Positions 35,159-59,937 of a DNA stretch of 64,000 nucleotides are shown here, piece by piece (position 1 is the first letter of the stretch; each line of letters starts with the position of its first letter). Where the stretch lies: positions 140,905-204,904 of the IMG/VR virus record IMGVR_UViG_3300042391_001376. One strand, 5' to 3'. Under the pieces are notes generated by a model. That model did not search any database and was not told where the DNA came from. It saw only the letters and a list, made by a program, of their open reading frames with translations. The translations under genes were made by a program, and so were the position numbers.

Positions 35159-35178
35159 CAAAAGAACAAAGGAACTCT

Positions 35179-42312: not shown

Positions 42313-42645
42313 ATGTTAATAGAACGAAAGCCCTGGATGCAGGAATCTTCTTGTAATGAAGAAGATACAATTGTATTTTTCCCTAACAGATATACTGAAG
42401 CTACAGTGGCTAAGCCATTTTCTCTATGCGACACATGTTTAGTTAAAGCCGACTGTCTTTACGAGGCAATGATTACTGATTCTGTTGGCATATGGGGCGG
42501 AACAACCGAATACCAACGACTCATGCTTTTATCTAAATTATTTAATGATAACTCAAAAAATGTTAACATGAAAGCAATTATTAAGATAATAGAAAACAAC
42601 TACTACTCAATACCAATTTCATCTAGATATGAACAAAAATATTAA
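42313..42645 (+). CDS. whiB: WhiB-family transcription factor
   Basis: W...SSC...FFP...CDTCLVKADC...GIWGG. Confidence 0.9.
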   Translation: MLIERKPWMQESSCNEEDTIVFFPNRYTEATVAKPFSLCDTCLVKADCLYEAMITDSVGIWGGTTEYQRLMLLSKLFNDNSKNVNMKAIIKIIENNYYSIPISSRYEQKY

Positions 42646-44278: not shown

Positions 44279-44662
44279 ATGAGCTCAGAAGATTATAAAA
44301 AGTTAGATAAAATTAAAAAATTTAACTTTTCTTTTGATATGGTAACAAAAAGTAAAGCTGAGCTCCAAGAACAACGCGATGCAGTAAAGGAAAGAATAGA
44401 CAAGATCGTTAACCATTTTACGATAGACGATGTACCTATTCTTTCCTACATACTGCATGTAACTACTTCTCGTGTAGAATTAAAGAAGCTAGCTAAAGCT
44501 ATAGACAGACTCGCTGATTTAGCTGATGTCAATACTGCCTTAAGTAATAAGCTTAAAGTTATCGAAGCTGCAGAGTCAGACCCAAATTGGTTTGCTCTAG
44601 CTTTTGGTGACTTTGACCAAGAAATTGATCTTGATCTAGAAAAATTTTTTACCCAAGAATAG
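44279..44662 (+). CDS. hypothetical protein
   Basis: AAGGAG RBS. Confidence 0.65.
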   Translation: MSSEDYKKLDKIKKFNFSFDMVTKSKAELQEQRDAVKERIDKIVNHFTIDDVPILSYILHVTTSRVELKKLAKAIDRLADLADVNTALSNKLKVIEAAESDPNWFALAFGDFDQEIDLDLEKFFTQE

Positions 44663-44680
44663 CCTAAGGAATATAATATC

Positions 44681-46324
44681 ATGGATAAAGTTTCTTACAG
44701 TTTTGTAAAAGAAGACAGCAATCTTATCTTTCGGTCTAAAGTAAATTCATTTAATCTTGACCACGTTACAGATAAAGATATAACTTCATTTTTTACATCT
44801 TTTTCTAATTATGCTTACTTTGATACTGGCTTGCTTCCTGTTGATGGAACTGGCTTATTAGGTATCAGACGCGCAGGAGACCACACTCAAGTTATATACC
44901 AGTATAAGCCTGGTATGTATTATGTTAATTGGGGTGCATATGAAAGAGACTCTGATTACACTAAGTATTATTTAGCTCAACCTTACAGGATTGTTGTTAT
45001 AGACTTTCTTAGCGACAACCTTTTAGGTGCTAGAACATTTTATACTGTAGAGCCGGCTATCCATTCTGCTGTTCAGCTTTACCATGTAAACTTACCAAAC
45101 ATTAATTGCAGAGGTTACCGAGGCAACGGTGTTGGTTGGATTTGCCTATACCATAATGAAGATTGGTCTACTCTTCCATTTAATGAAAGATTGAACAGAG
45201 CTCTTGAGCGTTGTTCTGGCGTTGAAGTATATAACGATGCCAACATGAGTGAAACAGACGGCCCACGCTTTTACCAAGAAAGAGAAATGCCTTTGTATAC
45301 TTGGTCCCCAAGTAAGTGGGAAAAAAAATCTACTGAAGAAGGTTGGGAATGGACTTTAGATTCATCTAATTGGATACCAATTCATGTTGAAAGCAGAGAC
45401 AGCCAAGGGCAACACAAAGAAGGCGGCATTCCCCTTACTTTAGTAGACGCAATTATTGGCAACTATAGTTCATACTATGGAGATACTTATTTGCCAAAAC
45501 CAGTAAACGCTTTGACTCGTTCAGATCTTGAAATTAATCCAATACAAGTTACTGATTGGTTTGTTAAATCTTATAATTCATCTAAAACTACATTTTCTGG
45601 GTTAGACCCATATTCTGCTAGTTCACAAATCAGAGAACAAAATTCTGTAGCTGTACCTAATTTGTTTGATGAAGACGAAGAAGAAATTGATGAAGACAGC
45701 GAAGACTACATAGCCTGTACAATGACAGGTGAAGCTACACCAATCGAAGATTGTTCAAAAGATCATTCTTATTACAATGTTAATACAGGCAAATGCATGA
45801 AGATTTGTTCTGAATGCATAAGCAGTCACGAGATGGTTTACGCAGAAAACACCATGCAGTTTTATGTCCCTGATCATATGGGCGACAGCCTTTATTATGA
45901 TACACACCACGATCAGTATTACGACACTAATGCCATAAAGACTCCTTGGGGCAACTGCTCTAATTGCGGAGGTATTCACATTTCTCCATTCCCAGATAAA
46001 CAATTATTCTTAATTTGGGAAAATCAACAAGAAGAACATTCTTCACTTTGTGCTTTCTGTATAGGTGGAGAAAATGTTGCTGATTGTATTAATTGTGGCG
46101 TCAATGTACCAAGTCACACTTCTCAACATTTTGATCCAACAACAGTAAAGTATGATCCTTCCACACAATACTACCATTGTGCGGTGTGTGTTGAAATCCT
46201 TCAATCAGCCAATTCTGAAGACGTAGCAGAATCAAACCAAGCTGAAGCTAAAAATTTATTACAACTATTGTCAGAACTTACAGATGGTACTTTAATTATA
46301 TCTTCTGATGAAGAACCGTTCTAA
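44681..46324 (+). CDS. prokaryotic E2 family D-like conjugating enzyme fused to CxxC-rich C-terminal region; ends SDEEPF
   Basis: DTGLLP, YLAQPYRIV, LYHVNLPNI...GWICL; adjacent to JAB/E1/Ubl. Confidence 0.72.
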   Translation: MDKVSYSFVKEDSNLIFRSKVNSFNLDHVTDKDITSFFTSFSNYAYFDTGLLPVDGTGLLGIRRAGDHTQVIYQYKPGMYYVNWGAYERDSDYTKYYLAQPYRIVVIDFLSDNLLGARTFYTVEPAIHSAVQLYHVNLPNINCRGYRGNGVGWICLYHNEDWSTLPFNERLNRALERCSGVEVYNDANMSETDGPRFYQEREMPLYTWSPSKWEKKSTEEGWEWTLDSSNWIPIHVESRDSQGQHKEGGIPLTLVDAIIGNYSSYYGDTYLPKPVNALTRSDLEINPIQVTDWFVKSYNSSKTTFSGLDPYSASSQIREQNSVAVPNLFDEDEEEIDEDSEDYIACTMTGEATPIEDCSKDHSYYNVNTGKCMKICSECISSHEMVYAENTMQFYVPDHMGDSLYYDTHHDQYYDTNAIKTPWGNCSNCGGIHISPFPDKQLFLIWENQQEEHSSLCAFCIGGENVADCINCGVNVPSHTSQHFDPTTVKYDPSTQYYHCAVCVEILQSANSEDVAESNQAEAKNLLQLLSELTDGTLIISSDEEPF

Positions 46325-46363
46325 TCAAAAACAACGAATACAATATAACATTAGGGAGAACAT

Positions 46364-48103
46364 ATGTCTCAGCAAGTTGAACAAACTAGCAAGATAACTC
46401 TTGATCAACTCCAATACTTTTGGATGCCATCAGGTTTGCCTTGCTTCGTCGCAGACAGGGATAGTATTTGCGACATAGTAGAAGATTTTGGTTTTAATAT
46501 TTATTATCTTCTAGCTAATAAAAAAACTGTTAAAACCATTCCGAACAACAGTGTTAAAACCACGACCACAACTGGTTATTCAAGTGGCGCTACAACATAC
46601 AACTATCCGAGTGCTCAGCCAACACAAGTTATAACATATAACTCTTCTTTGTTTAAAGTTATAAATAATTTTGTTGGTAGAGTTATAGAGCTTTCCGACG
46701 ATGAACTTCCAGAAACATTCTTTGTAGCTGAAGAAACATGCGAGTACAATATGCCCGCTATGCCGCATGTTCTTGTTGACAAAATGGATCAATTCTTTAG
46801 ACTTGTTTATTCTCAACATGGCACTGAATCAATTGTCTTGTTGACATATGATATGACTAAGACTGGTCCAGAAGGTTGGGGAGTTTTAGTTCCTGAACAG
46901 TCAAACACCGCAGCACATTGTAAGTATGATGCAGACAGCATTGCTCTTATTAAGCCAGAAGATGTTTTGATTGTCGGATCTGTTCATAGTCACCCAGAAA
47001 TGTCGGCTTATGCTTCTGGCACAGACCACGCTGACCAGGCTGATTTTGATGGTCTTCACATTACTTACGGTTGGCAGAAGTCTCAAAACAATGGTGCTAC
47101 TCAGTACCACTTAGAGCTTCAAATGGCAGGAACTGCTTACACCTTAAAGCCTGAAGATGTTTTTGAGGATTATACTTTTCAAAAAGAACCAGACCCAGAC
47201 GTAGTTGAATGGTCAGGTAAAGTAAAAAAAGCGCTCCCCCCTATAGCGGGGGGTACAACACCGCTGGCTTCGGCGCAGGCACAGTATCAACAACAAGCAC
47301 AAAAAATGACCTCATTACAAAATGGGACAACACCTATGGTGGGTGGAACACTTACTAGCAGGAATCTTAGCTGGCAACAAATGGTAGAAGGCTTAGAGCC
47401 TCAAGCTATTGTAATTGTAGAAGTAGATCTTCAACTTTCTAGAACTTCAATTTGTCCAAGTTGTGATTTTGATTTAGATACACCAGATGTAAATGCTGGA
47501 TATTGTTGCTCATGCGACGTTCCAGTTATATCATCTACACATGGTATCATGCAGATTGCTGCTCAGTTTGCTAAATATTGTGAACAAAGAAATTTAGATT
47601 ATCTTAAAACTATTCCTTATCTTTATGGTCAATCTGAAAAAGATGAAGTCTTTTTAATGAAGCTAAATCTTCAAGAAGAACTTACCGATATTCATACATA
47701 TGATTATGTTTATGAAAAAGATTCCGATTATGTTTATCTTCCTGAAGAAGACCCATATGATTCTATCTACGATATAAACGGAACAAGAACTGTCTGTTGC
47801 AATATTCCTATGGAGGATTTTGTATCTGATTGTTCGTGCAATCCAGCTATATTATTTGAAGATTTAACAAATTTTGAAGAACATATTAGGGATACAGAAA
47901 TGTACGCTGAAGGAACTTCATGTTTGGAATGCGTGCATTATTATAATGCTACCTGTCCAGCATTTCGTTCTGCTTTAACTACTTATGTTAAGCAGGGGTT
48001 TACACTAAATCTTGATCAACACAGAAACACGATAATTCCTTGCGAAAACTATCATTCTGTATATAGTTCATTTGAATCAACAGGAGCAAAAAATGGCAAC
48101 TAA
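46364..48103 (+). CDS. JAB/MPN+ metallo-isopeptidase with Cys-rich C-terminal extension
   Basis: TES...VPEQ...GSVHSHP...ASGTD..D (JAMM motif). Confidence 0.88.
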   Translation: MSQQVEQTSKITLDQLQYFWMPSGLPCFVADRDSICDIVEDFGFNIYYLLANKKTVKTIPNNSVKTTTTTGYSSGATTYNYPSAQPTQVITYNSSLFKVINNFVGRVIELSDDELPETFFVAEETCEYNMPAMPHVLVDKMDQFFRLVYSQHGTESIVLLTYDMTKTGPEGWGVLVPEQSNTAAHCKYDADSIALIKPEDVLIVGSVHSHPEMSAYASGTDHADQADFDGLHITYGWQKSQNNGATQYHLELQMAGTAYTLKPEDVFEDYTFQKEPDPDVVEWSGKVKKALPPIAGGTTPLASAQAQYQQQAQKMTSLQNGTTPMVGGTLTSRNLSWQQMVEGLEPQAIVIVEVDLQLSRTSICPSCDFDLDTPDVNAGYCCSCDVPVISSTHGIMQIAAQFAKYCEQRNLDYLKTIPYLYGQSEKDEVFLMKLNLQEELTDIHTYDYVYEKDSDYVYLPEEDPYDSIYDINGTRTVCCNIPMEDFVSDCSCNPAILFEDLTNFEEHIRDTEMYAEGTSCLECVHYYNATCPAFRSALTTYVKQGFTLNLDQHRNTIIPCENYHSVYSSFESTGAKNGN

Positions 48104-48851
48104 AAGATTTGTAGTTATTGGAGCAGGAGGCGTAGGCACTTGGCTTACCGCTGGCCTAGTAAGACTTCTTGAATGGAAGTTTCCTGGTTCTGGTTTAATT
48201 ATAGTAGATGGAGATAACTATGAAGAAAAAAATAAAGAACGTCAAGAGTTCGCTAAAATTGGCAACAAAGCTGTTGTCAAAGCGCACGAACTTACGCCTC
48301 AATTCCAGAAAACAACAATTATACCGGTTCCGAAGTGGGTTGTCAGTGACACCTTCAAAGGAGTCAGTGCAGACGAAGACTCTCCGAAGATTAAAGCGTC
48401 GGATCTCATATCTGAAGGAGATGTTGTTTTTGCAGTTGTCGATAACTTCGCTGCGCGTAAGATTATTTTTGATGCAGCTGCGAGGTTAAACAACGTAGAT
48501 GTATTTACTGGTGGCAATGACGACGCTTTGTTTGGTTCTATATATCATTACCAAAAAAGAAACGGCGTTGCAATAACCGAACATCCTTCAACATTCCATC
48601 CTGAATATGAAAATGCTCCAGATAAAAATCCTGGTGAACTATCATGCCAGGAGAGATCAGAAATAGAAGGTGGTACTCAACTACTAGCCACTAATATGGC
48701 AGTAGCTGCACTAATCCTTGGTCGCGTACAAAAAACAATTGTACTAGACCAAAGCCCCGAAGAAACTGAAATATATTTTGATTTAGGCGTAGGCAAAGCT
48801 GAGCCTTACAATCGGATGGTATCTCATGTTTCTGAATATATTACAGCATAA
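48093..48851 (+). CDS. ThiF/E1-like Ubl-activating adenylyltransferase
   Basis: VVIGAGGVG, DGD...NKERQ, VVDNFAAR, ELSC, Q...TN. Confidence 0.92.
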   Translation: MATKRFVVIGAGGVGTWLTAGLVRLLEWKFPGSGLIIVDGDNYEEKNKERQEFAKIGNKAVVKAHELTPQFQKTTIIPVPKWVVSDTFKGVSADEDSPKIKASDLISEGDVVFAVVDNFAARKIIFDAAARLNNVDVFTGGNDDALFGSIYHYQKRNGVAITEHPSTFHPEYENAPDKNPGELSCQERSEIEGGTQLLATNMAVAALILGRVQKTIVLDQSPEETEIYFDLGVGKAEPYNRMVSHVSEYITA

Positions 48852-48870
48852 ACAATAACAAGGAGCAATC

Positions 48871-49122
48871 ATGGAAAACAATATGTCAGGTGCATCAGCA
48901 TCACAAGCAACGGGAATGGCAAATCTTAGATTTGGCGTTTACAATCAACCTACTAACGTAGCTGGTAAATCAGTACAACAGACTCGTGAACAGTTCTCAA
49001 AAATTTGGGGTATCCCAACAGACGCAGTTGCCTACAAGGGCAAAGAGAAACTCGACGAGAACTATGTTATCCAACCAGGTGACAACGTAGAATTCCACCG
49101 TCGTGCTGGAGAAAAGGGCTGA
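48871..49122 (+). CDS. ubiquitin-like (beta-grasp) protein with C-terminal Gly
   Basis: 83 aa ending PGDNVEFHRRAGEKG; directly after E1. Confidence 0.85.
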   Translation: MENNMSGASASQATGMANLRFGVYNQPTNVAGKSVQQTREQFSKIWGIPTDAVAYKGKEKLDENYVIQPGDNVEFHRRAGEKG

Positions 49123-49140
49123 TACATTCAGTCTCAGGTT

Positions 49141-49190
49141 TGTGGGAAGGCTCTATACATTCCGCGTAAGAGTCTTCCCACATTTTTTTT
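49141..49190 (+). terminator. intrinsic terminator after the Ubl gene
   Basis: TGTGGGAAGGCTCT/AGAGTCTTCCCACA plus T8. Confidence 0.85.
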
Positions 49191-49222
49191 AAAAGGCTAG
49201 AGTCTATCTATTAGGGGACATA

Positions 49223-50827
49223 ATGTTATTTGATGAAATAAAACTAGGCTATCCAGCTTTATGGCTTAAGACCACTGAATTTTCCAGGGCCGCCGAAAGC
49301 TTAATCTCTTATAATTTTAGAGATTTTTATACTATTGATTTTGAATCTGCTTTTTCTCAGTATGTTGATGGCTCATGGAAGACTGTTCTTATTGAAACAC
49401 TTAATCCAGAAACAAATGAAAGAGTTGCACAGTCAACTTTTGATCCTTCTGTTTCTTTGGATTATCTTATTAATTTAAAGTCTGAAAAACCTGTTACTTT
49501 TATTCTTTCTATTATTGGTAAGCCAGATATGACATTGCCTCCATACATGTCATTTATTGCTTCTTTGAACAGTAAGTACAGAAAGAATTTCTGGGCCGAT
49601 GATGCCAACGCTGGAGCAATACAGATTATATTCTTATCTTCTACTGACGCACCAGAAGAATACGCTCACATGTTTAAGAATGTTGAATTTTCTTATCCAA
49701 ATGCTGAAGAACTATTCACTGTTGTAAACCATATTGACAATGCTTCTGCAGGGCGATTTATAAAACAAGATTCAGTTAAAGATATTGTTCGTTCTGGTTT
49801 AGGTCTTGCTGAAGATCAGTTTGTAGATCTTTGTTTGCGTTCCATTTTGCATCACAACGAAGTTAACCCAAAGTACATATATGATCAAAAGATGGCTAAG
49901 ATTAAACAAGCCGGCATTCTTGAAATCATTAAGCCAACTATATCTTTTGCTAACATTGGTGGCTTAGATAATATTAAAGATATTATTCAAAGAACTAAAC
50001 TTCTTTGGGATAACAGAGAGCAAGCAAAATCTTTTGGCGTTGTACCAATCAGAAGAGTTCTTATGGTGGGCGTTCCAGGCACTGGCAAGTCAGCTATCTG
50101 CCAAGCAACTGCTCATGAACTAGGTCTTGACTTAGCTCGTACTGGAATTAGCCAAGTTATGAATTCTTTTGTTGGCCAGTCAGAGCAGAACATGCGAGCA
50201 GTTTTTCAACAGATTAAGATGATGACTCCACTTTGTGTTTGGATCGACGAGTTTGGTCGAGATCTTTCAGGTGGTGCTTCTTCTGCTTCTGTAGATGCGG
50301 GCACTACTGATCGCGTACACGGCGAATTCTTAACTGGTCTTCAAGAACTTCCAGAAGATACATTTCTTATGTGTGCAGCTAATCAAATAGAGAACCTTCG
50401 TCCCGAGATGCTTCGCGCAGATCGTTTCGATAAAATTGTTTTTGTTGGTCTTCCATCTCTTGAGGAAAGAAAAGATATCTTTAAGATATGCTTGAAGACA
50501 ATTGAAACAGATCACCAATTTGATCTAGATGCCCTAGCTGAAAAAGCAGAATACTTTACTGGCGCAGAAATAACTGCATTGATCAAAGAAGTTAAGTTCT
50601 TTGTAGTTTCATCTGAACTTAGATCTATAAATACTAATGATATTATATCTTATATTCCAAACGTTCGTAATATACTTTGGAACAAGAACAGAGACATGAT
50701 CAAGGGTATGTACCAATACGCCCTTGAACAGTGGGACTGGGCTTCGACACAACAACAAAAAGATGCTAAACTAATATTAGCAGGAAGAAAGTCTAATTCT
50801 GAATCAGAGTTAGCTTGGAAGATTTAA
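49223..50827 (+). CDS. classical-clade AAA ATPase (Ycf46-like)
   Basis: IGGLDNIK, GVPGTGKS, FVGQSE pore loop, WIDE, RADRFD. Confidence 0.92.
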   Translation: MLFDEIKLGYPALWLKTTEFSRAAESLISYNFRDFYTIDFESAFSQYVDGSWKTVLIETLNPETNERVAQSTFDPSVSLDYLINLKSEKPVTFILSIIGKPDMTLPPYMSFIASLNSKYRKNFWADDANAGAIQIIFLSSTDAPEEYAHMFKNVEFSYPNAEELFTVVNHIDNASAGRFIKQDSVKDIVRSGLGLAEDQFVDLCLRSILHHNEVNPKYIYDQKMAKIKQAGILEIIKPTISFANIGGLDNIKDIIQRTKLLWDNREQAKSFGVVPIRRVLMVGVPGTGKSAICQATAHELGLDLARTGISQVMNSFVGQSEQNMRAVFQQIKMMTPLCVWIDEFGRDLSGGASSASVDAGTTDRVHGEFLTGLQELPEDTFLMCAANQIENLRPEMLRADRFDKIVFVGLPSLEERKDIFKICLKTIETDHQFDLDALAEKAEYFTGAEITALIKEVKFFVVSSELRSINTNDIISYIPNVRNILWNKNRDMIKGMYQYALEQWDWASTQQQKDAKLILAGRKSNSESELAWKI

Positions 50828-50829
50828 GG

Positions 50830-51483
50830 ATGCACATGTCAGATCAAATAGATTTTTCTAATATTGAAGAAGTATTAAACAGTATAGAAATGGATAAAGA
50901 TATCCCGTCGAACCATTCTATATCTGACGCTAAGCAGTATGATCAGGACCTTTATAAAAAATGGTTTCGTTCTAAAACTCAGAGCGGTTTTCTTTCAATT
51001 AAACCTTGGTACCAAGGACTTAAATTTAAAATAGATATTGGCAAGACTTCGCCTGATGGCAAGTTACTCGGTAGCACTATGGTTTTTGTTGACGCAATTG
51101 ATTTTGCCGCATATCTTGATTCTATCATTAATGGAACAGCTAAAATTAATTTTCCTACTAATGAAAAGAATGGCAGCCCCACCGATGAATCTTTTGTTTC
51201 TTATGGCGGAGGATTAATAGATTCTAAGCCAATATCTAGAATATTTAAATCTCATTATTGGCAGAATTCAGACAAGTCTTATGACAGCAATGCTTTCACC
51301 TGGAAGTGCGGCCACTTTGCTGCACGCAAAACAGAGAGCGGAGCCTTCATCCCCAACATGTCTTCACCAGTTTCTGTTGATTCTATCAAAGTAACTAGAC
51401 AAGATATTGTTAGTATAGCTTTTATATTGAAGCTATCACTTACATCCCACGTTACAAACAACCCAGATTGGTATAATATCTAA
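50830..51483 (+). CDS. hypothetical protein
   Basis: ORF 50815..51483; start moved to the first ATG. Confidence 0.7.
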   Translation: MHMSDQIDFSNIEEVLNSIEMDKDIPSNHSISDAKQYDQDLYKKWFRSKTQSGFLSIKPWYQGLKFKIDIGKTSPDGKLLGSTMVFVDAIDFAAYLDSIINGTAKINFPTNEKNGSPTDESFVSYGGGLIDSKPISRIFKSHYWQNSDKSYDSNAFTWKCGHFAARKTESGAFIPNMSSPVSVDSIKVTRQDIVSIAFILKLSLTSHVTNNPDWYNI

Positions 51484-51485
51484 TT

Positions 51486-51875
51486 ATGGAAACGCCTATT
51501 GAACAACCAGATGCTAGTTTAATTACTGGTTTACTTTCTACCTTGATGGAAGAAGTTTATAAAAAAATTTATGACGATATTGAAAATCAATTTAAGGATA
51601 TCATCAAGAAGATAGAAGCCTACGAAGATCAGGTCGCTACAATAGTTTATGCTTACGGCGAACAAGCAGTAGTGATGGAAGCTTTAGCAACTCAGTTGAA
51701 CTATGCTTCACCTGAAGCACAAAAAGCTTTTACCGATTCGCTTTCGGAACAAAGAAAAAAGATGGTGGAGACATTAAATGAAGGATCTAAAGGATTTGTG
51801 GCCGATAAAGATCCAGGACTTGCCAGAGCCATTAACAACGTGGTTAAGGAAAAGTTATCTAACACAGATAAATAA
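51486..51875 (+). CDS. helical hypothetical protein
   Basis: 129-aa ORF. Confidence 0.7.
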   Translation: METPIEQPDASLITGLLSTLMEEVYKKIYDDIENQFKDIIKKIEAYEDQVATIVYAYGEQAVVMEALATQLNYASPEAQKAFTDSLSEQRKKMVETLNEGSKGFVADKDPGLARAINNVVKEKLSNTDK

Positions 51876-52064
51876 TAATGAATGCGTTTTGTTTGTAGAT
51901 AAACAGAACTATTTATTATTACAGAATATAGCTTATCTGTCTCAAATTTATCCAATTGTTAAATCTATTTGTCCTGAATTTAAATCTCTTCATATGGTTG
52001 AAAGTTCACTCTTAACCTATCTTCGACAATCAAAAATAGAACTATACTCTATAGAGGTCAACTA

Positions 52065-52724
52065 ATGTTAATAACTGATTTTAAGTCTCATTCTTCTTTT
52101 AATGCTTTCTGGAATGAAGCAATGCCGAACCTTCATGGTAGTAAGCGGCTAACTTTTGATTTATATATCCTGTGGAAATTTAACCGGATAGATATTATTA
52201 AAGCTCACATCGAAAATGATGTTAGCATTACAAATTATGTAGAACAATATTCTGCTTCACACAAAGAAGAATATGATCAGTTTGTAAGTAACTACAATTA
52301 CTTTTATTCTGAAAGAGAATTCTATGTTTATCCATATAGTTCTACTAAATTTATTAATCACATGTTTAAAAATGTTCTTCCATCAGCAAAAGACAACTTG
52401 TTCAATGTGTTATTTGATAATTCATTATTCATAAAAGATAAATTTGAGCCTTCCACTACTGGCTTCAAAGGTTGCATTATTGCCAAATATACACCCGACG
52501 ACGCAGCACTAGTCTCTATACATAACAACGTATTCGAAGCGACCCCTTTCGACTCTATAGGGCATGCTAAGAAGATAGTAGAGTGTTTAGATAGTTTGGC
52601 AAAAGACAATGAAGCTTACCGTACTTATATAGCAGAGTTGGAAACAGCTGTTCTTCACTTGAACAAGCAAATAGACTTGCAACAAAAACAGGGACTTAAC
52701 GGTTATCTTTTAAGTTGGCATTAA
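52065..52724 (+). CDS. hypothetical protein
   Basis: GAGG RBS, 219 aa. Confidence 0.7.
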   Translation: MLITDFKSHSSFNAFWNEAMPNLHGSKRLTFDLYILWKFNRIDIIKAHIENDVSITNYVEQYSASHKEEYDQFVSNYNYFYSEREFYVYPYSSTKFINHMFKNVLPSAKDNLFNVLFDNSLFIKDKFEPSTTGFKGCIIAKYTPDDAALVSIHNNVFEATPFDSIGHAKKIVECLDSLAKDNEAYRTYIAELETAVLHLNKQIDLQQKQGLNGYLLSWH

Positions 52725-52757
52725 TATTATAAACATCTAATATATTTAAAGGATTTT

Positions 52758-53633
52758 ATGTATAAAATAAAATTAAGTGAAATAGGTTCAAAGTTTTCAA
52801 CAGTAAAAATGGACAGTGAGCACACTGTAAATTTTTACATTAATAATTATAATAAAATTCCTGTTAATAAAGTAGTTTATGATTTTTTTAATAGCGGTGA
52901 ATTGTACATTAATTATCCTGCACACTTAGGTGAAATCACTGCTTTGAGCGAAACTATCCAAACTATATATTCTAACTATATTATGAAAGATAGTTTCATG
53001 AAACAGTTAGATCCGGACAAAAGTCAAATTCCTCATTGGACCGAAAGATATGTAGACGATAAATTAAATGGTTGGATGCTAGATTTAACTCTTATATTTA
53101 AAGTTTCTCCTTCATCAGTTCCTGTTCCAGTATGCAAGAATTTTACCGGGATGACCAAAGATGGTTCTATACATATTTCTTCTGGTTATCTTTTTGCCAA
53201 CAAACCATCTACCGTAGACACTAATTGTTCTAGTCCCAAGGTTTATGTAAACAAGCTTACCCCTCATCATTGCGTTTACTCTAATCCTTCTAATTCAACT
53301 TACGGTTTTTCTTCTTGTCCTTTTTATGAATATGATTATGAACTCATTAAATCCGTAGAGGTTAATTCAAACACTTCTAAGGCTCAAAGTTTTGAAATTA
53401 GATATATTAAATTATCTAATGGTTTTGCAACTTACCAATTGTTTGACAAAACAAACAGTCAAATAAATTATGTTGTTCATGAAAAAGATACTCAAGAATT
53501 AAGAGATAGTATAATTTCAGTTATGGATGAAGTTATGTCTTCTTATGATCATTATATTCTTAAGCCAAATCAAAAACACGAAGAATCTTTAAATTCTTTT
53601 GAAAAAAAAAGCTATATTCTATCTTTAGTTTGA
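52758..53633 (+). CDS. hypothetical protein with four spaced Cys
   Basis: 291-aa ORF. Confidence 0.7.
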   Translation: MYKIKLSEIGSKFSTVKMDSEHTVNFYINNYNKIPVNKVVYDFFNSGELYINYPAHLGEITALSETIQTIYSNYIMKDSFMKQLDPDKSQIPHWTERYVDDKLNGWMLDLTLIFKVSPSSVPVPVCKNFTGMTKDGSIHISSGYLFANKPSTVDTNCSSPKVYVNKLTPHHCVYSNPSNSTYGFSSCPFYEYDYELIKSVEVNSNTSKAQSFEIRYIKLSNGFATYQLFDKTNSQINYVVHEKDTQELRDSIISVMDEVMSSYDHYILKPNQKHEESLNSFEKKSYILSLV

Positions 53634-53642
53634 GGCCCAATT

Positions 53643-55097
53643 ATGCAACATATCTTTGATTCTAACAGTGACCACACGAGGATCTATACAATTGAATCCT
53701 CCCAACCCTATGCCTATTCAGAGTTTACTGATTGGATTAGACACTACGACTCTGCTAGGTATGTTCCTCCATATTTAGAAAAAGTTGCTTTCCAAGAAAT
53801 GATACAGATTCCAACTCCTAGACTTTACAGCATAAAAAAAGTTCGTTCTTTTGAACGATATAAAGATTTTGTTTACCCAATGGCAGTAAGGTATATTTCC
53901 CAAAATAATACCTATGTTATAGAACGTCCTCCTTTTGAATTAGAAGTTGATTTTCGCATGGGTGGCGCTCATTCAGGGCATCCTAAAATGCCAGCTGTTA
54001 AAATCTGGATTCCTTGGACAGTTATGATATTCAAGGCTAACTCATTTGTTACTGGATCTTTTTCTGATGTTCAGCTTTTTCTAAACAGTGGGCCAATTGA
54101 ATCTCTTGATGACCAACTTATTCCTTGTCTTTACCCTAATTCTTATAGCAATTCTAAGATATGTTTTTCTGCTTCCTTAAGTGACTTTAATGATGTTTTA
54201 GATCTTGAAGAATTTGAAAAAGGAAACATTGGTTATATCTATAATTACATATTTAATAATTATATGATGGGTGGATGGAATGCTGATCTTGAACAGAACT
54301 TAGTGCGCATTCGTTACATGAAGAATAATAAAGATTATCCTATAACAAACTTGTTTCTTAACCCTAGTTCTGATAAAGATTTTTATTCTAAGCTATCTTC
54401 TGTTTTTTCTAAAGAATTTTTTTCTAAAATTAAAAGATTTTATAAAGAAGACTTTGAATTAAATAGGTCTAGAATTAGTAGAGAAAAACTCTACACTAGA
54501 AACTTTGGTATATTTTCTGCTTTTACTTTAGAACAAAAAATTAATTTTATCAAAGAAATTCAAACTTACAATTCTTTAAATAAAATAGATGGTTATAAAC
54601 TTTCAAATTTAATTGAAGAACATGAGCATAGAAGTCATTGTGAAACTTCCGCTTCTGGCGTAAGTTCAATACTTAAACTAACTGATTCTTCTATACAGTA
54701 CACCTATAAAAGTAATGTATTTGATTTTTATTTTGTAAGAAATAGAACTATGATATCTAGACATGAATCAATTTTTCAACAAATTCCTCCTCAACAGCTT
54801 ACTTTAATTCAGCGTCAGCTTATAGACTTTATGGCTAATAGAAGTGAGAATGAACAAATTGCTTTTGTTTACGATTTGACCGATAACACTTATGAAGTAA
54901 TTATTAATTATAATGATAGAGAATTTATTTCTGAAATATATAACACTATACTTGCGCATTGCAAAGAACGCCTTGAAGAAACACAAGAAAGATCTAGATT
55001 TAGAACCTGGTTTAATACAGTAGATGAATCATTTTTGGCAAGATCTATAGACCACCTTTGCAAGCCAAAACAAAATATTGAACAGGATGTTGTATGA
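53643..55097 (+). CDS. prokaryotic E2 family D-like protein (paralog 2)
   Basis: VIERPP, IWIPWTVMIF, LYPNSYSNSKICF, WNADL. Confidence 0.7.
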   Translation: MQHIFDSNSDHTRIYTIESSQPYAYSEFTDWIRHYDSARYVPPYLEKVAFQEMIQIPTPRLYSIKKVRSFERYKDFVYPMAVRYISQNNTYVIERPPFELEVDFRMGGAHSGHPKMPAVKIWIPWTVMIFKANSFVTGSFSDVQLFLNSGPIESLDDQLIPCLYPNSYSNSKICFSASLSDFNDVLDLEEFEKGNIGYIYNYIFNNYMMGGWNADLEQNLVRIRYMKNNKDYPITNLFLNPSSDKDFYSKLSSVFSKEFFSKIKRFYKEDFELNRSRISREKLYTRNFGIFSAFTLEQKINFIKEIQTYNSLNKIDGYKLSNLIEEHEHRSHCETSASGVSSILKLTDSSIQYTYKSNVFDFYFVRNRTMISRHESIFQQIPPQQLTLIQRQLIDFMANRSENEQIAFVYDLTDNTYEVIINYNDREFISEIYNTILAHCKERLEETQERSRFRTWFNTVDESFLARSIDHLCKPKQNIEQDVV

Positions 55098-56272
55098 ACG
55101 ATAAAGGTTACAGACTCACAATAGCAGACTTTAATTTAGAAGATTCTAATTATCGGACACACAATGCCGCCAGTCTTCAGACTCATATAAACATTACTAA
55201 TCCTTTTTTGTTTGATGCCGAGAGAAACAATACCATGCTTCTTGTTGGCGACACCGCAAAAAGAACTATAGGTGAATATTTTTCTGTTTTTAATCCTGTA
55301 AAAACTAACTCTACAGATACAGGTATATTGCCTCCTGGAGTCAAAATAATCGGAACTAATTATTTAGTTTTTGAAAAACCTCCTACATTTAAAAATATAT
55401 TTTATGTTCCTGCATCTAGATCTGATGTCCCAGATGATTGTGAAGATCTTGAACAGGTTTATCGTATTCCAATACCTTGGCAATTATATTTTGTTAAGTT
55501 TAATCCTAACATGTATACCTATGAAGTAAGAATGTTCTTCATGAAGAGCAGCTTATCTTCTACTGACCAAGAGTTATTTCTTCCACCTATTCCAAACTTT
55601 TATACTGACGGTTTACTTTGTTCCCCAACAATGTCAAACATGGAGGATGTTGATAGATATCCTAAGAATCATGCAGGCATAATACAGTCTGCTTATGACT
55701 GGGTTTGGAATTCTGGCACGAACCATGATTTGACAGAAGCTTGTTTACATCTTTCTATGCAGTTGCCGCGGAACCAAACAGTGCTAAAGAACATCCCTGA
55801 GCAAGTATATCAATTAAATTTTCCCACTAGCAATATGTCCATAAACAGATACAGTGCTTCTCCAGGGCAGGTTAAACTTATCCTAAGTGTTTGGGAAAAA
55901 TTTTCTTTATCCGATGTTTGCGAAATGTCATGGCCGAATGTGTCTGGTCCTACTCGCACTTTTGATTATCGAACTGACAGTGTCCGTGACCAGAGCGCTT
56001 ATTACGATAATTTAGCAGATTACCTTTCTGGCCATTATGACCCTGAAGATATAGAAGCAGTTATGGAAAATGACGATTATGACCATAGCGACTATGTCTC
56101 ATATTTATTAGACAATGGTTTAATCAGCATCCCTTCTGGAAGACCGTGGGATATAACTTATACTTATTCTTCTTTACTCCCTCATCTTATTGCAACACTC
56201 GGTGCTGAATTAAATACCGCTGATTGCAGCTTTGAGCGCGAAATTCAAGTAATGACCACAAATAATGTGTGA
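55094..56272 (+). CDS. prokaryotic E2 family D-like protein (paralog 3)
   Basis: DTGILPPG, VFEKPP, YRIPIPWQLYF, PPIPNFYTDGLLC, WNSGTNHDL. Confidence 0.8.
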   Translation: MNDKGYRLTIADFNLEDSNYRTHNAASLQTHINITNPFLFDAERNNTMLLVGDTAKRTIGEYFSVFNPVKTNSTDTGILPPGVKIIGTNYLVFEKPPTFKNIFYVPASRSDVPDDCEDLEQVYRIPIPWQLYFVKFNPNMYTYEVRMFFMKSSLSSTDQELFLPPIPNFYTDGLLCSPTMSNMEDVDRYPKNHAGIIQSAYDWVWNSGTNHDLTEACLHLSMQLPRNQTVLKNIPEQVYQLNFPTSNMSINRYSASPGQVKLILSVWEKFSLSDVCEMSWPNVSGPTRTFDYRTDSVRDQSAYYDNLADYLSGHYDPEDIEAVMENDDYDHSDYVSYLLDNGLISIPSGRPWDITYTYSSLLPHLIATLGAELNTADCSFEREIQVMTTNNV

Positions 56273-56281
56273 CCATTAAGG

Positions 56282-56310
56282 TTGATTTTTTATCAAATAA
56301 ATGATATTAT
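56282..56310 (+). promoter_or_regulatory. sigma-70-type promoter
   Basis: TTGATT-N17-TATTAT with TG. Confidence 0.55.
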
Positions 56311-56345
56311 ATTATCATATATAAACTTAAATAAAGGTAGATAAA

Positions 56346-56642
56346 ATGTCCCGTAATTCTATCACTGAACCAATCTTTAACAGGTCCGAAGTAGCCCAAA
56401 TACTTAATGTTTCTACTCTTACAATTTCTAATAGAGAAAAAAACAATAAGTACCCTAGTCCTAAAAGAGACTTAAACAACTATAGAGTTTACAGCTTGAA
56501 TGATGTTTTTAATCTTCAACTTATAACTTACAACCACATTGATCCAAAGCCAATCATATCAATCATGTATGACAAAGGGTTTGAAGATGTAAAACAGCTT
56601 GGTAAGATGATAGATTCAGCTTTATCTAGAAGGACGCAATAA
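56346..56642 (+). CDS. MerR-like HTH DNA-binding protein
   Basis: SEVAQILNVSTLTISNRE...PKRDLNNYRVYS. Confidence 0.85.
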   Translation: MSRNSITEPIFNRSEVAQILNVSTLTISNREKNNKYPSPKRDLNNYRVYSLNDVFNLQLITYNHIDPKPIISIMYDKGFEDVKQLGKMIDSALSRRTQ

Positions 56643-56643
56643 C

Positions 56644-56886
56644 ATGCAGGACGAAGACGATAACACAAAGGTAGACGGATTAATTGATCAGGTAGATGAG
56701 TACGTATCTACTGATAAAGTTCTTGACTTAAAGAGTGGAATATACAATTTGTTTGTTTCGCTTTTTAACGACTACACGATTGACTTTGGTCCTGTTAAGG
56801 CTGTAGAATTATCAACGCAGTTTCTTGACGAAATATCAACTAACTTTAAACAAATCCTAAATAACAATACAGAAAGCAAGGAATAG
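56644..56886 (+). CDS. hypothetical protein
   Basis: operon packing. Confidence 0.6.
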   Translation: MQDEDDNTKVDGLIDQVDEYVSTDKVLDLKSGIYNLFVSLFNDYTIDFGPVKAVELSTQFLDEISTNFKQILNNNTESKE

Positions 56887-56888
56887 CT

Positions 56889-57320
56889 ATGATAGACCCA
56901 CGCAACTTAATTAACCTTACCGGAGGAGTTGTTACCGATGTTGAATTGGTTAACGACAAAATTGCAAAGTTTCGTTTAGCGGTAGATTACGCTGGATCAG
57001 AAAAAGGTTCAGATAATACATCAGGATATTTTGATGTGGTGTATTACCTCAAAGATGCCAATGGTTTTATTGGCAAGAACGCAACCTTTATCCATGGTCA
57101 AGTAAAGGCTGATAAAATTAAGAAGGGCGCAAAGCTTCAAATTGTTGGACGCTTAGTGCAAGAAAGATGGAAGCAAGACGATCAAAATAAGAATCGTGTT
57201 GTTGTAGTTGCAGAGCATATTTCTTATGCAACAACTGCTGGAGCCCAAGGAGCTAAAACAGCTTCCGCTGGAACATCGTCTGACACAGAAACGCAAAGCT
57301 CTGTACCAGACAGCTTCTAA
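56889..57320 (+). CDS. ssb: single-stranded DNA-binding protein
   Basis: NLINLTG, FRLAVD, KKG...VGRL...W, tail VPDSF. Confidence 0.9.
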   Translation: MIDPRNLINLTGGVVTDVELVNDKIAKFRLAVDYAGSEKGSDNTSGYFDVVYYLKDANGFIGKNATFIHGQVKADKIKKGAKLQIVGRLVQERWKQDDQNKNRVVVVAEHISYATTAGAQGAKTASAGTSSDTETQSSVPDSF

Positions 57321-58069
57321 TGGAAGAATTTAGTGAAGAGTTATTAAACTCTTTAATAGAGGAAGCCCTGAACGAAAAGGGGGAGAGTCTATTAAGACCA
57401 GCTTCTGGGATGTACCTATCCTTTGGAGAAACAGATCTGCTTGCTTTAACACATCAATATATGTCAAAGCATTTGCCGCAGTCTGAACTTAATAGTATTT
57501 TTCAAGAGTTTCGTTCAGAGCTTCTTTCTAGAAAAGTTGCGATAACTCCCAAAGAAGTACATACCGTTACTCGTAACTGCAGGAAATGCGCCATACCATC
57601 CACTGCCGAATTGCCCAAATGGAACGTAGTCAATCCAGATGTAGTAATCGTTGCAGAATCTCCTTCTATAGAACCTGACGCCATAAATTTAATGGTAGAA
57701 TCTATTAAGGAAGCCGGCTTTAAATCAAATGACTTATGCTTAACGTATGTTAATAGATGTCCTAAGTTTGGTAAGTATGATAGCAAAGAAATAATTAATT
57801 GTTCTCCATATTTACATACTGAAATACAATCTTTGAATCCTAAGCTCATAGTTACTATGGGCGGGCTTGCTTGTTCGGTTATATTTGGAACTGAGATTAA
57901 AATAAAAGATTACCGTGGTAGTGTGACATGGCTAGGCTATTGGCCCGTGCTGCCAACATATTCTCCTGGATATGTTTTAAAATCAGGTGCTAATGCAGTG
58001 GAGCAGTTCCGCTCTGATATGATTCAAGCTTATCAATTTATACATCAATCTAAGAAAGAAGTTGTATGA
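57320..58069 (+). CDS. uracil-DNA glycosylase family 4-like protein
   Basis: CRKC, VAESP, NRCP, CSPYL..EI, TYSP. Confidence 0.85.
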   Translation: MEEFSEELLNSLIEEALNEKGESLLRPASGMYLSFGETDLLALTHQYMSKHLPQSELNSIFQEFRSELLSRKVAITPKEVHTVTRNCRKCAIPSTAELPKWNVVNPDVVIVAESPSIEPDAINLMVESIKEAGFKSNDLCLTYVNRCPKFGKYDSKEIINCSPYLHTEIQSLNPKLIVTMGGLACSVIFGTEIKIKDYRGSVTWLGYWPVLPTYSPGYVLKSGANAVEQFRSDMIQAYQFIHQSKKEVV

Positions 58070-58467
58070 TGAAAGAAACAATATTTACTCACTCTCTTAT
58101 ATCTGACCTTGACGCTAAACAGTTTACTAAATTTGAAGAACTAGTTACAAAAGATGTTAAGTCTACTTCTACCTCAGAAGAGTTAGAAATATTAAAATCA
58201 AATTTAGATCTTTGGCTTTATTCATTGTCTTCAATTAGAAGAAATGTTGAATACCATTTGTCTTCAAGATCTGCTGCCCGCAAAGCTAAGATTAACGAAA
58301 TGCTTCAAAGCCAGGAACCTAAAGAAGCTATAAATGCTTTTAAGAATACTGAAGCTGAGTGGAGAGTTAACGCAATAAAGTTTCTTTCGACTATAGAGAA
58401 GAAAACTCTTTATGTAAAGATGATTGTAAAAGAGCAGAAACAATTAGAGAGAATAGAATACATTTAA
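58066..58467 (+). CDS. hypothetical protein
   Basis: 133-aa ORF. Confidence 0.7.
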   Translation: MMKETIFTHSLISDLDAKQFTKFEELVTKDVKSTSTSEELEILKSNLDLWLYSLSSIRRNVEYHLSSRSAARKAKINEMLQSQEPKEAINAFKNTEAEWRVNAIKFLSTIEKKTLYVKMIVKEQKQLERIEYI

Positions 58468-58468
58468 G

Positions 58469-58918
58469 ATGCAGGCCATTATCCATTGCCCAGAAATTCT
58501 TCATTCTGTTGAATCTACTTTGGATGAACAAAGTTCTTTTGGTCTTGTAGAAAACTTCTACCATGTTTTTCCGTTGTTTTACCACTATTCAGCTAGTGAA
58601 TATGGCCTTAAAGAAACTCTTGACTTAGCAACAACTTTTTCTGCGCTGCATGCTAGAGTCAAGGTTCAGGTTAATGGCTTTGACCAAACGATAAATTCTT
58701 CTATACCATTAGATATTTTAAGATATAAGATGTTGGAAGATGGCTCATATCATACGATAAGCCGTGCAAAAGGTTTTTATAAACCAGGCTACATAGTAGA
58801 AGGTGCTTTGTGGTCTAACGGTTTTTACCATTTGACCAGAGAAGAAGAATCTACCCAAATACTAGATCTACATTTCTATATCGACCAGTACACCAAAACG
58901 ATGCATAGGTACATATGA
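58469..58918 (+). CDS. hypothetical protein
   Basis: 149-aa ORF. Confidence 0.65.
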   Translation: MQAIIHCPEILHSVESTLDEQSSFGLVENFYHVFPLFYHYSASEYGLKETLDLATTFSALHARVKVQVNGFDQTINSSIPLDILRYKMLEDGSYHTISRAKGFYKPGYIVEGALWSNGFYHLTREEESTQILDLHFYIDQYTKTMHRYI

Positions 58919-59190
58919 CAATTAAATCTTATTTCTTTCGCGACAGTTCTTTTATTATAAATGTTTCTTGGGATGAAGACTCTGATTTTTTATATATAAA
59001 ATTTAATTCTGGAACCACTTGGGTATATTATGATGTTTCTGAAGAAACATATAATCGTTTGATTAGATCTGTTTCTGTTGGTGAGTACTTTAATAAAAAT
59101 ATAAGAAATAAATATTCGTCTGCAAGAATTAATTATCCAATTGAAAATGGTAATATCGATGTCCAGAAAAAAGAACAAGAAGCATCGTAA
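58915..59190 (+). CDS. KTSC-domain protein
   Basis: SSFI..V.WD...LYIKFNSG..WVY..V...SVGEYFNKNIR. Confidence 0.9.
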   Translation: MTIKSYFFRDSSFIINVSWDEDSDFLYIKFNSGTTWVYYDVSEETYNRLIRSVSVGEYFNKNIRNKYSSARINYPIENGNIDVQKKEQEAS

Positions 59191-59322
59191 TAACAAAAAT
59201 TACGCTTATTACGAAAAAATGTGGAAACCAGCTAATTCAAATGATATAAACAGAATAGCTGTTCAGGTTTTTGGGTCACTTTATTTTTCGCAACAATATG
59301 AAAATGATGATATAATAAATAC

Positions 59323-59937
59323 ATGACAACTATTGTTGGTTTACAAGGCGATAATTTTGCTGTTGTCTATGTTGATTCACGCATATCGTCTAGTGATTCC
59401 GGTGGATATATCTCCCAAATTTCAACTCTAAAAGAGGGATGCGGTAAAGTTGCGGTTAATGGCAAATACCTTTTGGGTGCCGCAGGAGATGTTAGAGCTA
59501 TCAACATTCTTCACCATGTATTCCAACCACCAACACCACCGCCAAATATGCGAGGCAAGCGTTTAGATCAATTCTTTACAGCTAAGTTTATTCCCGCATT
59601 AAGAGAATGTTTTGAACAACAGGGTTACGCAATACCTGATATTAAAGAAGACAAAGAGCACATGGCCGAACAGGCTTCTACAATACTTGTAGTTATACAT
59701 GGAATAATTTATGTCGTTGATGGAGATTACTCCTGGACCTCTGATTCTTCTGGCATGTATGCTCTTGGTTCTGGTTCATCTTATGCCTTAGGAGCATTGC
59801 AGGCTTTAGCTACTAATAGAAAGCTTACTATACCTCAAGCTAAAAAATTAGCCTTAAAAGCTTTATCTACAGCGGCAAAGTTCGATCCATATACAGGTCC
59901 GCCTTTTCATTGCCATATACAGGAACAAGGTAAATAG
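59323..59937 (+). CDS. Ntn-hydrolase threonine protease (proteasome beta/HslV-like)
   Basis: N-terminal M-TTIVG, DSR, K, GAAG, LGSGSSYALGAL, DPYTG. Confidence 0.9.
   Translation: MTTIVGLQGDNFAVVYVDSRISSSDSGGYISQISTLKEGCGKVAVNGKYLLGAAGDVRAINILHHVFQPPTPPPNMRGKRLDQFFTAKFIPALRECFEQQGYAIPDIKEDKEHMAEQASTILVVIHGIIYVVDGDYSWTSDSSGMYALGSGSSYALGALQALATNRKLTIPQAKKLALKALSTAAKFDPYTGPPFHCHIQEQGK

Follow-up and report, generated by a model that had tools for sequence, protein, structure and literature searches.

A phage-encoded, predicted ubiquitin-like tagging cassette linked to an AAA ATPase in uncultured lake-water jumbo phages

The analysis of a 64,000-nucleotide window (positions 140,905 to 204,904 of IMG/VR record IMGVR_UViG_3300042391_001376) reveals a run of genes on the + strand at 44681-51875 that encode, in order, a divergent E2-like protein, a JAMM/JAB protease, a ThiF-type E1, an 83-aa protein ending in Gly, a classical AAA ATPase, and two small conserved proteins, with two further E2-like paralogs at 53643-56272 and an HslV-like Thr protease at 59323-59937. 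All open reading frames named in the preliminary description are present, and its observation is confirmed. The block is preceded by a conserved 127-aa protein (44279-44662, +) with no Pfam or NCBIfam hit, whose ortholog was found immediately upstream of the first E2-like gene in 44 of 45 loci, the exception being a truncated contig, as well as in distant relatives.

The E1 (48072-48851, +; 259 aa from a TTG start, with an ATG at 48093 as an alternative start) was identified by Pfam ThiF at 48.8 bits against a cut-off of 28.1, and the motifs GxGGxG, DGDxxExxNxxRQ, and DNFxAR together with Cys192, which lies after the adenylation motifs, are invariant in 23 orthologs (G17/G19/G20, D46/D48, R57/Q58, K66, D124/N125, R129, and C192). 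Its profile hits UBA5, MccB, TcdA, ATG7, and Uba4 in the PDB at E about 2e-3, while among family models it scores best against the ThiF/MoeB type. The JAB protein (46364-48103, +; 579 aa) carries an N-terminal extension and a C-terminal Cys-rich region in which C364/C367/C381/C384 are invariant. Although its Prok-JAB score of 23.5 bits falls just under the cut-off of 25, the full JAMM motif (E155, H208-x-H210, S218, and D221) is present and at least 95% conserved, a weak AMSH match covers the motif, and a distant ortholog, at locus L069, carries a precomputed Prok-JAB (PF14464) hit.

The 83-aa protein (48871-49122, +) gave no Pfam hit, yet its AlphaFold2 model is confident (pLDDT about 90 over residues 17-76) and shows a beta-beta-alpha-beta-beta-beta order preceded by a disordered N-terminal tail. 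The top Foldseek matches of this model are all ubiquitin, SUMO, and NEDD8 (probability 1.00, TM about 0.6), thus identifying a predicted beta-grasp ubiquitin-like protein (Ubl). K33, K60, and K82 are invariant, as is the C-terminal EFHR[RK][AS]GEKG, and the protein ends at Gly in 28 of 29 distinct orthologs, the remaining one having a 2-residue extension that would need trimming.

The three E2-like proteins gave no Pfam hit over threshold, and their link to E2 enzymes is remote, resting on sub-threshold Prok-E2_D hits and low-Z structural matches that are almost all UBC enzymes. In the first (E2#1; 44681-46324, +; 547 aa), residues 1-270 form a highly conserved divergent UBC-like domain with invariant N140 and C155, followed by a Cys-rich C-terminal part (CxxC pairs) of variable length. 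The second (E2#2; 53643-55097, +; 484 aa) has conserved N165 and C173, 8 residues apart, and the third (E2#3; 55094-56272, +; 392 aa, 96 homologs) has invariant N168, C176, and P178. E2#3 matches Prok-E2_D at E 0.047 over 34-167 of 171 profile positions, and 13 of 46 family members hit this profile. E2#2 and E2#3 are paralogs (BLASTP 1e-5), and the N-domain of E2#1 was linked to them by hhalign (97.4%, E 1e-11), so that the three form one superfamily with an invariant Asn...Cys motif; the Cys is invariant in all three, the PN...C motif of E2#2 being at least 95% conserved in 29 orthologs. The tandem pair E2#2 and E2#3 is present in all five genomes searched, including the divergent ones.

The AAA ATPase (49223-50827, +; 534 aa) consists of an N-domain (about 1-230) without family assignment and one AAA module with Walker A/B, an F-V-G pore loop, and Arg fingers, these motifs being at least 95% conserved. 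It was recognized by Pfam AAA (82.5 bits) and AAA_lid_3, and its nearest models are CDC48 (127.5 bits) and PAN (121.8 bits). The next gene overlaps its end and encodes a conserved 222-aa protein (50815-51483, +), for which the ESM Atlas gave only weak leads to a Whirly/PurA-like ssDNA-binding fold, and the invariant block closes with a conserved 129-aa protein (51486-51875, +) that gave only sub-threshold Pfam hits. Orthologs of both were found in all loci that reach them. The protease (59323-59937, +; 204 aa) scores 36.8 bits against Pfam Proteasome, belongs to the HslV family phrog_1040, starts with MTTIV, placing Thr at the N-terminus, and is the only such gene in the genome.

This arrangement is not a chance one. 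The order small ORF, E2, JAB, E1, Ubl, AAA, and two small ORFs is conserved wherever contigs allow in about 60 related phage contigs, comprising 45 + 12 IMG/VR loci, the most distant family members, and two MAG contigs, with E1 (46-90% identity) and Ubl as the best-conserved genes of the block. The AAA gene follows the Ubl gene in every relative long enough to show it, although small ORFs or a 2.4-kb insert separate the two in some lineages. The genes are tightly packed with no + strand terminator-like site between them, and independent lake metagenomes reproduce the sequence. Small contigs from two lake metatranscriptome libraries fall on JAB, E1, Ubl, and AAA, which is weak evidence. The cassette occurs only in this phage context, has no homologs in GenBank phages, and we found no prior description of it. 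Despite about 36% GC, an actinobacterial host is plausible, as three WhiB genes exceed the Pfam cut-off and the best cultured relative of the protease is in an Actinomycetia phage.

Taken together, we consider it more likely than not, though by a limited margin, that the block 44279-51875 and the tandem pair at 53643-56272 are a core conserved module of a widespread clade of freshwater jumbo phages with probable actinobacterial hosts, encoding a self-contained Ubl conjugation and deconjugation system coupled to an AAA remodeller, whereas such systems were so far described in bacteria, mostly as anti-phage defences. In this view, the E1 would adenylate the free C-terminal Gly83 of the SUMO-shaped Ubl and probably take it onto Cys192, from which it would pass to Cys155 of E2#1, encoded beside JAB and E1, or to Cys173 or Cys176 of the downstream paralogs, the different and variable C-terminal regions of the three E2s most likely giving three target specificities without a separate E3. 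The Ubl would then be attached to lysines of target proteins, the JAB protease would remove it again and trim rare extended precursors, and the co-inherited CDC48/PAN-like ATPase would unfold or extract the tagged proteins. What the analysis establishes is the identity of the folds and motifs, their conservation, and the invariant gene linkage; in the absence of biochemical evidence, every chemical step, the coupling to the AAA, and the targets (host proteins during takeover or counter-defence, or the phage's own replication proteins) are inferred, and no E3 and no target have been identified.

The interpretation offered in the preliminary description is partly supported. The presence of E1, JAB, a predicted beta-grasp Ubl ending in Gly, three E2-like paralogs with a conserved Cys, and a co-inherited classical AAA holds, as does the suggestion that JAB is more likely a deconjugase, since the Ubl needs no C-terminal processing in 28 of 29 orthologs. 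Its assignment to the PRTRC type (NCBIfam TIGR03735-TIGR03742), which likewise includes a ThiF-family and a JAB-type protein, is not supported: PRTRC_ThiF scores 25.9 against a cut-off of 144.75 and PRTRC_A 18.7 against 101.8, PRTRC B, C, D, E, and F gave no hit, and no ParB-family gene was found in the genome, so that the cassette is not a member. Functional linkage to the protease, by which tagged proteins would be unfolded by the AAA and fed into it for degradation, is also not supported, and we regard this full model as unlikely. In its favor, the protease has an N-terminal Thr and conserved Lys and GSG residues, it is syntenic 14.3-16 kb downstream in seven large relatives, the AAA C-termini carry a conserved aromatic residue near the end, and no ClpP or HslU was found in the genome, leaving the protease with no obvious other phage-encoded partner. 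However, it lies 15 kb from the cassette start beyond MerR-like, SSB, UDG, and other genes and is probably independent of the module. It was not found in genomes G005, G006, G010, and G011, and no Proteasome-family gene was found in the divergent lineage that keeps cassette, AAA, and E2 pair, including a 90%-complete genome. Its closest cultured homolog (50% identity) sits beside WhiB in Actinomycetia phage DSL-LC01, in whose genome no E1 is found, and the AAA tail is not a canonical HbYX motif and is also present in lineages lacking the protease.

A further possibility, also unlikely in our assessment, is that the adjacency is only synteny, with E1, Ubl, JAB, and E2 forming a conjugation or regulatory unit and the AAA with the 222-aa and 129-aa proteins a separate replication or remodelling unit. 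The whole 44-59 kb region is collinear across the clade, the weak ssDNA-binding-fold leads of the 222-aa protein and the downstream SSB and UDG would fit replication, and AAA relatives at 28-34% identity stand alone in mycobacteriophages that have no E1 homolog. Against this, the AAA stays next to the Ubl cassette even in relatives whose E2#1 domain matches at only E about 1e-55 and where surrounding genes differ, and classical CDC48/PAN-type AAA proteins are protein unfoldases rather than replication factors. Still less likely is a phage-borne exclusion system that, like bacterial Bil systems, tags proteins of competing phages and protects the infected cell from superinfection. Although all characterised bacterial E1/E2/Ubl systems (type II CBASS, Bil, and probably Bub) are linked to anti-phage immunity (PMC11601596), PADLOC gave no matches to such systems beyond trivial E1 and AAA similarity, and the cassette is core, syntenic, and strongly conserved across a deep clade, while defence cargo is usually variable and patchy. 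The least likely reading is that the E1 only converts the Ubl to a thiocarboxylate for a thiolation reaction, as with ThiS, MoaD, or TtuB, without protein conjugation. The E1 does score best against ThiF/MoeB-type models and such pairs are ancestrally sulfur carriers (PMC1779556). The Ubl tail resembles ThiS/MoaD C-termini. Yet no rhodanese domain was found on the E1 or anywhere in the genome, nor a TtuA-type PP-loop ATPase, whereas three E2-like proteins with an invariant Cys and a JAMM protease are co-conserved and the Ubl model is closest to SUMO/ubiquitin.

Among known systems, the bacterial E1/E2/JAB/small-Ubl operons of type "6d" (Iyer, Burroughs and Aravind 2006; PMC1779556), whose E2 we take to correspond to Pfam Prok-E2_D, share separate genes for a JAB with an N-terminal extension, an E1-like enzyme without a rhodanese domain, a small standalone beta-grasp protein ending in Gly, and an E2-like protein with a conserved Cys but no classical His before it. 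This similarity is supported by the recurrent weak Prok-E2_D hits and by Prok-E2_D-bearing ESM Atlas neighbours, but in this comparison every Pfam score is below the gathering threshold, no hit to Prok_Ub or alpha-hel2 was obtained, and the phage has three E2 paralogs with large extra domains, an AAA ATPase as a fixed neighbour, and a location in the core genome of a phage rather than on an island, plasmid, or ICE. As in Bil and CBASS, Cys residues on E1 and E2 are conserved; compared with Bil, type II CBASS (Cap2/Cap3), and Bub (PMC10557695, PMC10097602, PMC11601596), however, the PADLOC search gave no specific match, the genes are separate, unlike the Cap2 fusion, and the cassette is encoded by the phage, not the host, with an AAA partner and three E2s.

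Eukaryotic and archaeal ubiquitin/SAMP systems with Cdc48/PAN unfoldases likewise combine a beta-grasp modifier bearing a flexible Gly-ended tail with E1, E2-fold, and JAMM enzymes and a classical AAA ATPase. The phage AAA differs in having a single AAA module with an N-domain without family assignment and no HbYX tail, there is no 20S-type alpha/beta pair but only one HslV-like gene far away, and the Ubl tail ends in KG rather than GG. The lambda/T1 tail-assembly Ubl (TAPI) with the JAB-NlpC protein TAPK (PMC1779556) also places a phage-encoded beta-grasp protein with a conserved C-terminal Gly next to a JAB peptidase, but it has no E1 or E2 and lies in the tail module, while the cassette described here lies among early and replication-type genes and includes the activation and transfer enzymes.

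The 204,904-bp IMG/VR record, of which the window is the last 64 kb, is rated 97% complete. The window has a GC content of about 36% and encodes RecA, a helicase, SSB, UDG, a subtilase, and a ClpB-D2-like ATPase. Three WhiB-family genes over the Pfam cut-off were found in this one phage genome (window 23668-24024, 36690-37004, and 42313-42645, all on the + strand), a family that was found in only one of 14 control genomes, Corynebacterium, and WhiB also sits just upstream of the cassette in two distant relatives (loci L067 and L069). The assumption of an actinobacterial host made in the preliminary description is therefore reasonable, with low-GC freshwater actinobacteria as the probable hosts. 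Near-identical sequence is present in at least 18 lake-water metagenome runs from many studies, and DNA contigs from runs other than the likely source reproduce the cassette, one of them without a difference over 4.2 kb. By contrast, megablast and tblastn searches of the cassette, the E1, and the third E2-like protein (E2#3) against 50,697 GenBank phages returned no match, leaving no cultured relative of these to lean on.

All of the open reading frames named in the preliminary description exist as described, and its observation is confirmed. The E1 (48072-48851) matches Pfam ThiF (PF00899) at 48.8 bits against a cut-off of 28.1, and at 49.6 bits in the genome search. Its nucleotide-binding GxGGxG loop (G17/G19/G20), DGD..E..N..RQ adenylation motif (D46/D48, R57/Q58), DNF.AR Mg-site motif (D124/N125, R129), and Cys192 are invariant in 23 orthologs, while its profile weakly finds UBA5, MccB, TcdA, ATG7, and Uba4 in the PDB. 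As listed, the E1 frame starts at a TTG and overlaps the JAB gene by 32 nt (48072-48103), but similarity to orthologs begins near residue 7-11 and an ATG at 48093 is a plausible true start. The JAB protein (46364-48103) scores 23.5 bits against the Prok-JAB (PF14464) cut-off of 25, and a distant ortholog carries a precomputed PF14464 hit; the complete JAMM motif (E155, H208, H210, S218, and D221; E ... HxH x7 S xx D) is present and at least 95% conserved. The AAA protein (49223-50827) is a classical AAA ATPase (PF00004; 82.5 bits, with the lid domain at 30.7 bits) that scores highest against CDC48 and PAN models, and its Walker A/B motifs, F-V-G pore loop, and Arg fingers are at least 95% conserved.

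The 83-aa protein matches no sequence family. However, an AlphaFold2 model built on 28 orthologs is confident over residues 17-76 (pLDDT about 90) and shows the beta-grasp order of elements (bb-a-bb-b), with a disordered N-terminal tail and a flexible C-terminal tail of low pLDDT. Its best Foldseek matches in the PDB and in Swiss-Prot models are all ubiquitin, NEDD8, and above all SUMO (probability 1.00, TM about 0.6). The C-terminus EFHR[RK][AS]GEKG is invariant and ends the frame in 28 of 29 distinct orthologs; the remaining one (locus L057, 9177-9431) extends two residues (NI) past the otherwise terminal Gly and would need C-terminal processing, presumably by the JAB protease. A protein lacking a beta-grasp fold had been named beforehand as grounds for rejecting the proposal, and the predicted structure does not bear this out; the proposed role of JAB as mainly a deconjugase is a reasonable inference.

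The three E2-like proteins constitute the weakest part of the observation and required the most work. E2#2 and E2#3 are paralogs (BLASTP 1e-5), whereas direct BLASTP of E2#1 against either was not significant and only deep profiles linked them. The E2#3 family (96 homologs) has a single invariant Cys (C176) eight residues after an invariant Asn (N168) in 46 sequences, which is the spacing of the canonical HPN...Cys motif of E2 enzymes, and the corresponding N165 and C173 of E2#2 are at least 95% conserved. E2#3 gives a nearly full-length Prok-E2_D (PF14460) match that falls below threshold (13.9 bits against 25), as do 13 of 46 relatives, the best at E 0.0037, and the genome search returned no Prok-E2_D match. 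E2#1 has a very conserved 270-residue N-domain, with 463 homologs and 226 cluster representatives among 1.84 billion proteins, but 0 of 62 family members scanned against Pfam hit Prok-E2_D. With a diverse alignment of these 62 sequences, its profile matched the E2#3 family at 97.4% probability (E 1e-11), the alignment ending exactly at the PN motif; N140 and C155 are invariant in the 62 sequences, though with a spacing of 15, and a second Cys (C143) and two His residues are also conserved.

The AlphaFold2 model of E2#1 is very confident (pLDDT 94.7), yet Foldseek found no solved relative in the PDB and only uncharacterized proteins in AlphaFold DB clusters and BFVD. HMM profiles of both E2 families searched against PDB sequences gave only spurious hits (haemagglutinin HA2 and a LOV kinase). 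ESM Atlas neighbors, by features and by shape, are viral clusters in which 13-20% of members carry Prok-E2_D, while a search with the Cys-rich C-terminus of E2#1 gave noise-level scores with faint Prok-RING_2 and LIM leads and was set aside. Weak leads to PUR-alpha/Whirly/PC4-type ssDNA-binding folds were obtained for the small N-terminal subdomain of E2#1 (residues 1-45 of the protein at 44681) and for the 222-aa protein after the AAA gene (50815-51483, +). Although formal Pfam membership is not reached, we read the three proteins as putative members of a very divergent, phage-specific branch of the UBC/Prok-E2_D-like fold, in which a catalytic role of the Cys is inferred from sequence alone.

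In 12 loci found with the E1 and 45 found with the E2#1 domain, the order 127-aa ORF, E2#1, JAB, E1, Ubl, AAA, 222-aa ORF, and 129-aa ORF is kept wherever the contig is long enough. These loci lie on contigs of up to 268 kb, many of them near 200 kb, and E1 and Ubl are the best-conserved genes. The most distant family members found by the exhaustive profile search keep the same order with small extra ORFs. The gap between the Ubl and AAA genes, 101 nt in the window, is a recurrent insertion site, with a 2.4-kb insert in three loci of one lineage (L052-L054, between about 14.3 and 16.6 kb) and one or two small ORFs in distant relatives (L068, 15181-15663; L069, 8360-9134). The tandem E2#2/E2#3 pair lies 9-13 kb downstream in all five genomes searched, including the divergent ones. 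Unlinking of the AAA gene from the cassette in relatives, which had also been named beforehand as grounds for rejecting the proposal, was not seen. In a search for cellular copies among 185,579 species genomes, E2#1 gave none and the Ubl gave two contigs filed under bacterial MAGs (L076, Cyclobacteriaceae; L077, Ectothiorhodospiraceae), which carry the same phage synteny (M50-like, small ORF, E2, JAB, E1, Ubl) and are likely mis-binned phage DNA; as L077 has 52% GC, the clade may reach other habitats or hosts.

Taken as a whole, the interpretation in the preliminary description is partly supported, the best-supported reading being a phage-encoded Ubl conjugation/deconjugation system working with an AAA remodeller. 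What the analysis establishes are the sequence motifs, their conservation, and the gene linkage, together with the predicted fold of the modifier, whereas Ubl adenylation, the E1~Ubl thioester on Cys192, E2~Ubl thioester formation, covalent attachment to target proteins, deconjugation, and the coupling to the AAA are inferred. The genes are packed with gaps of 3-40 nt or overlaps, apart from the 101-nt gap before the AAA gene, and no + strand terminator-like site lies between them. A promoter-like site (44648-44677, +; 10 of 12 matches), whose -10 hexamer ends 4 nt before the E2#1 start codon, might fit a leaderless transcript, although the promoter scan overall was not above the shuffled expectation. 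A few small contigs (151-275 nt) from two lake metatranscriptome libraries fall on JAB, E1, Ubl, and AAA but not on E2#1, which is only a weak hint of transcription because such libraries can contain DNA.

Among the alternatives, that the position of the AAA gene reflects mere synteny is unlikely but ranks first, closely followed by the full tag, unfold, and degrade model of the preliminary description, which we also consider unlikely. The case of the HslV-like protease (59323-59937) is different. This protein matches Pfam Proteasome (PF00227; 36.8 bits against 22.4) and the PHROG "peptidase HslV family" (phrog_1040), and begins MTTIV (MTTI[VI] in the window and all 6 orthologs aligned), consistent with an N-terminal Thr nucleophile after Met. 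It is syntenic in seven large relatives and is the only proteasome-family gene in the genome, which has no ClpP. However, it lies 15 kb from the start of the cassette, beyond MerR-like, SSB, UDG, and KTSC genes, and neither its protein nor the Pfam model finds anything in four records of the divergent lineage, one of them 90% complete. Its closest cultured homolog (50% identity) sits beside a WhiB gene in Actinomycetia phage DSL-LC01, which has no E1 homolog. The AAA C-termini have a conserved aromatic residue near the end but not the HbYX motif, and this holds also where the protease is absent. We therefore treat the protease as a separate gene. Less likely still is a phage-borne exclusion system, and least likely is a sulfur carrier, as no rhodanese or PP-loop partner is found in the genome.

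The nearest described architecture is the "6d" operon type of Iyer et al. 2006, which comprises a JAB with an N-terminal extension, an E1, a small Gly-ended Ubl, a helical protein, and an E2-like protein with Cys but without the classical His (PMC1779556). Membership of the NCBIfam PRTRC system, which had been proposed in the preliminary description, was rejected, since PRTRC_ThiF scores 25.9 against a cut-off of 144.75 and PRTRC_A 18.7 against 101.8, PRTRC B, C, D, E, and F give no hits, and no ParB_N is found in the 204.9-kb genome, although a distant relative does have one upstream. The characterized bacterial pathways (type II CBASS, Bil, and Bub; PMC10097602, PMC10557695, PMC11601596) are host-encoded immunity, and a comparison with PADLOC models of type II CBASS and any other E1/E2-type systems yielded only faint E1-E2 model hits on the E1 N-terminus (E at best 5e-4) and generic AAA hits, giving no defence-system membership. 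Phage precedents are limited to the lambda/T1 tail-assembly Ubl with JAB, which has no E1 or E2, and the E1-like genes in the Asgard virus Nidhogg. A survey of 224 cultured jumbo phages mentions no such system, and full-text searches, in a library that is not exhaustive, found no report of a phage with E1, E2, Ubl, and JAB.

What distinguishes the present cassette from these systems is its place as a conserved core module of an abundant, globally distributed group of lake-water jumbo phages, its three E2 paralogs, and its fixed AAA unfoldase neighbor, an architecture not found in any paper searched. If active, it would show that phages also use ubiquitin-like tagging, extending such tagging to the virus side of the phage-bacterium conflict, and would offer a compact bacterial-virus model of modifier-plus-unfoldase coupling along with a new, very divergent branch of the E2 fold. 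The components of the cassette are small and lend themselves to direct testing. A more far-reaching possibility, which we regard as tentative, is that this would be the first complete ubiquitin-like "tag and unfold" system encoded by a virus of bacteria, in which the phage would bring its own modifier, E1, three target-selecting E2s, a deconjugase, and a Cdc48-like unfoldase to mark and dismantle host proteins, for example, defence or housekeeping complexes of actinobacteria, whose own tagging system is Pup. This would mirror the way eukaryotic viruses exploit ubiquitin and invert the known bacterial use of such systems against phages.

Further features of the window and its relatives were also observed. 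A 152-aa ORF (43427-43885, +) matches Peptidase_M50 (site-2 protease family) over threshold (39.1 bits), covering only the first half of the profile, and is conserved upstream of the cassette in many relatives. The AAA_2/ClpB_D2-small protein (6269-7684, - strand) was considered as an HslU partner for the protease, but it is a single-module ClpB/ClpA D2-type AAA+ protein and not HslU, in a genome with no ClpP and no HslU. An S8 subtilase (35152-36618, +) shows a sub-threshold resemblance to type VII secretion mycosins and, faintly, to the anti-phage peptidase IteS. One relative of 267,766 bp (G004) holds two diverged copies of the E2-like pair and of the HslV-like gene (25120-27362 and 32096-32698; 240707-242852 and 251442-252044), about 215-219 kb apart, which could be a real duplication or a chimeric assembly of two related phages. 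Finally, the HslV-like ortholog of a complete relative (G009:C1:160334-160945, - strand) contains one in-frame TAA, so it may be a pseudogene or a sequencing error.
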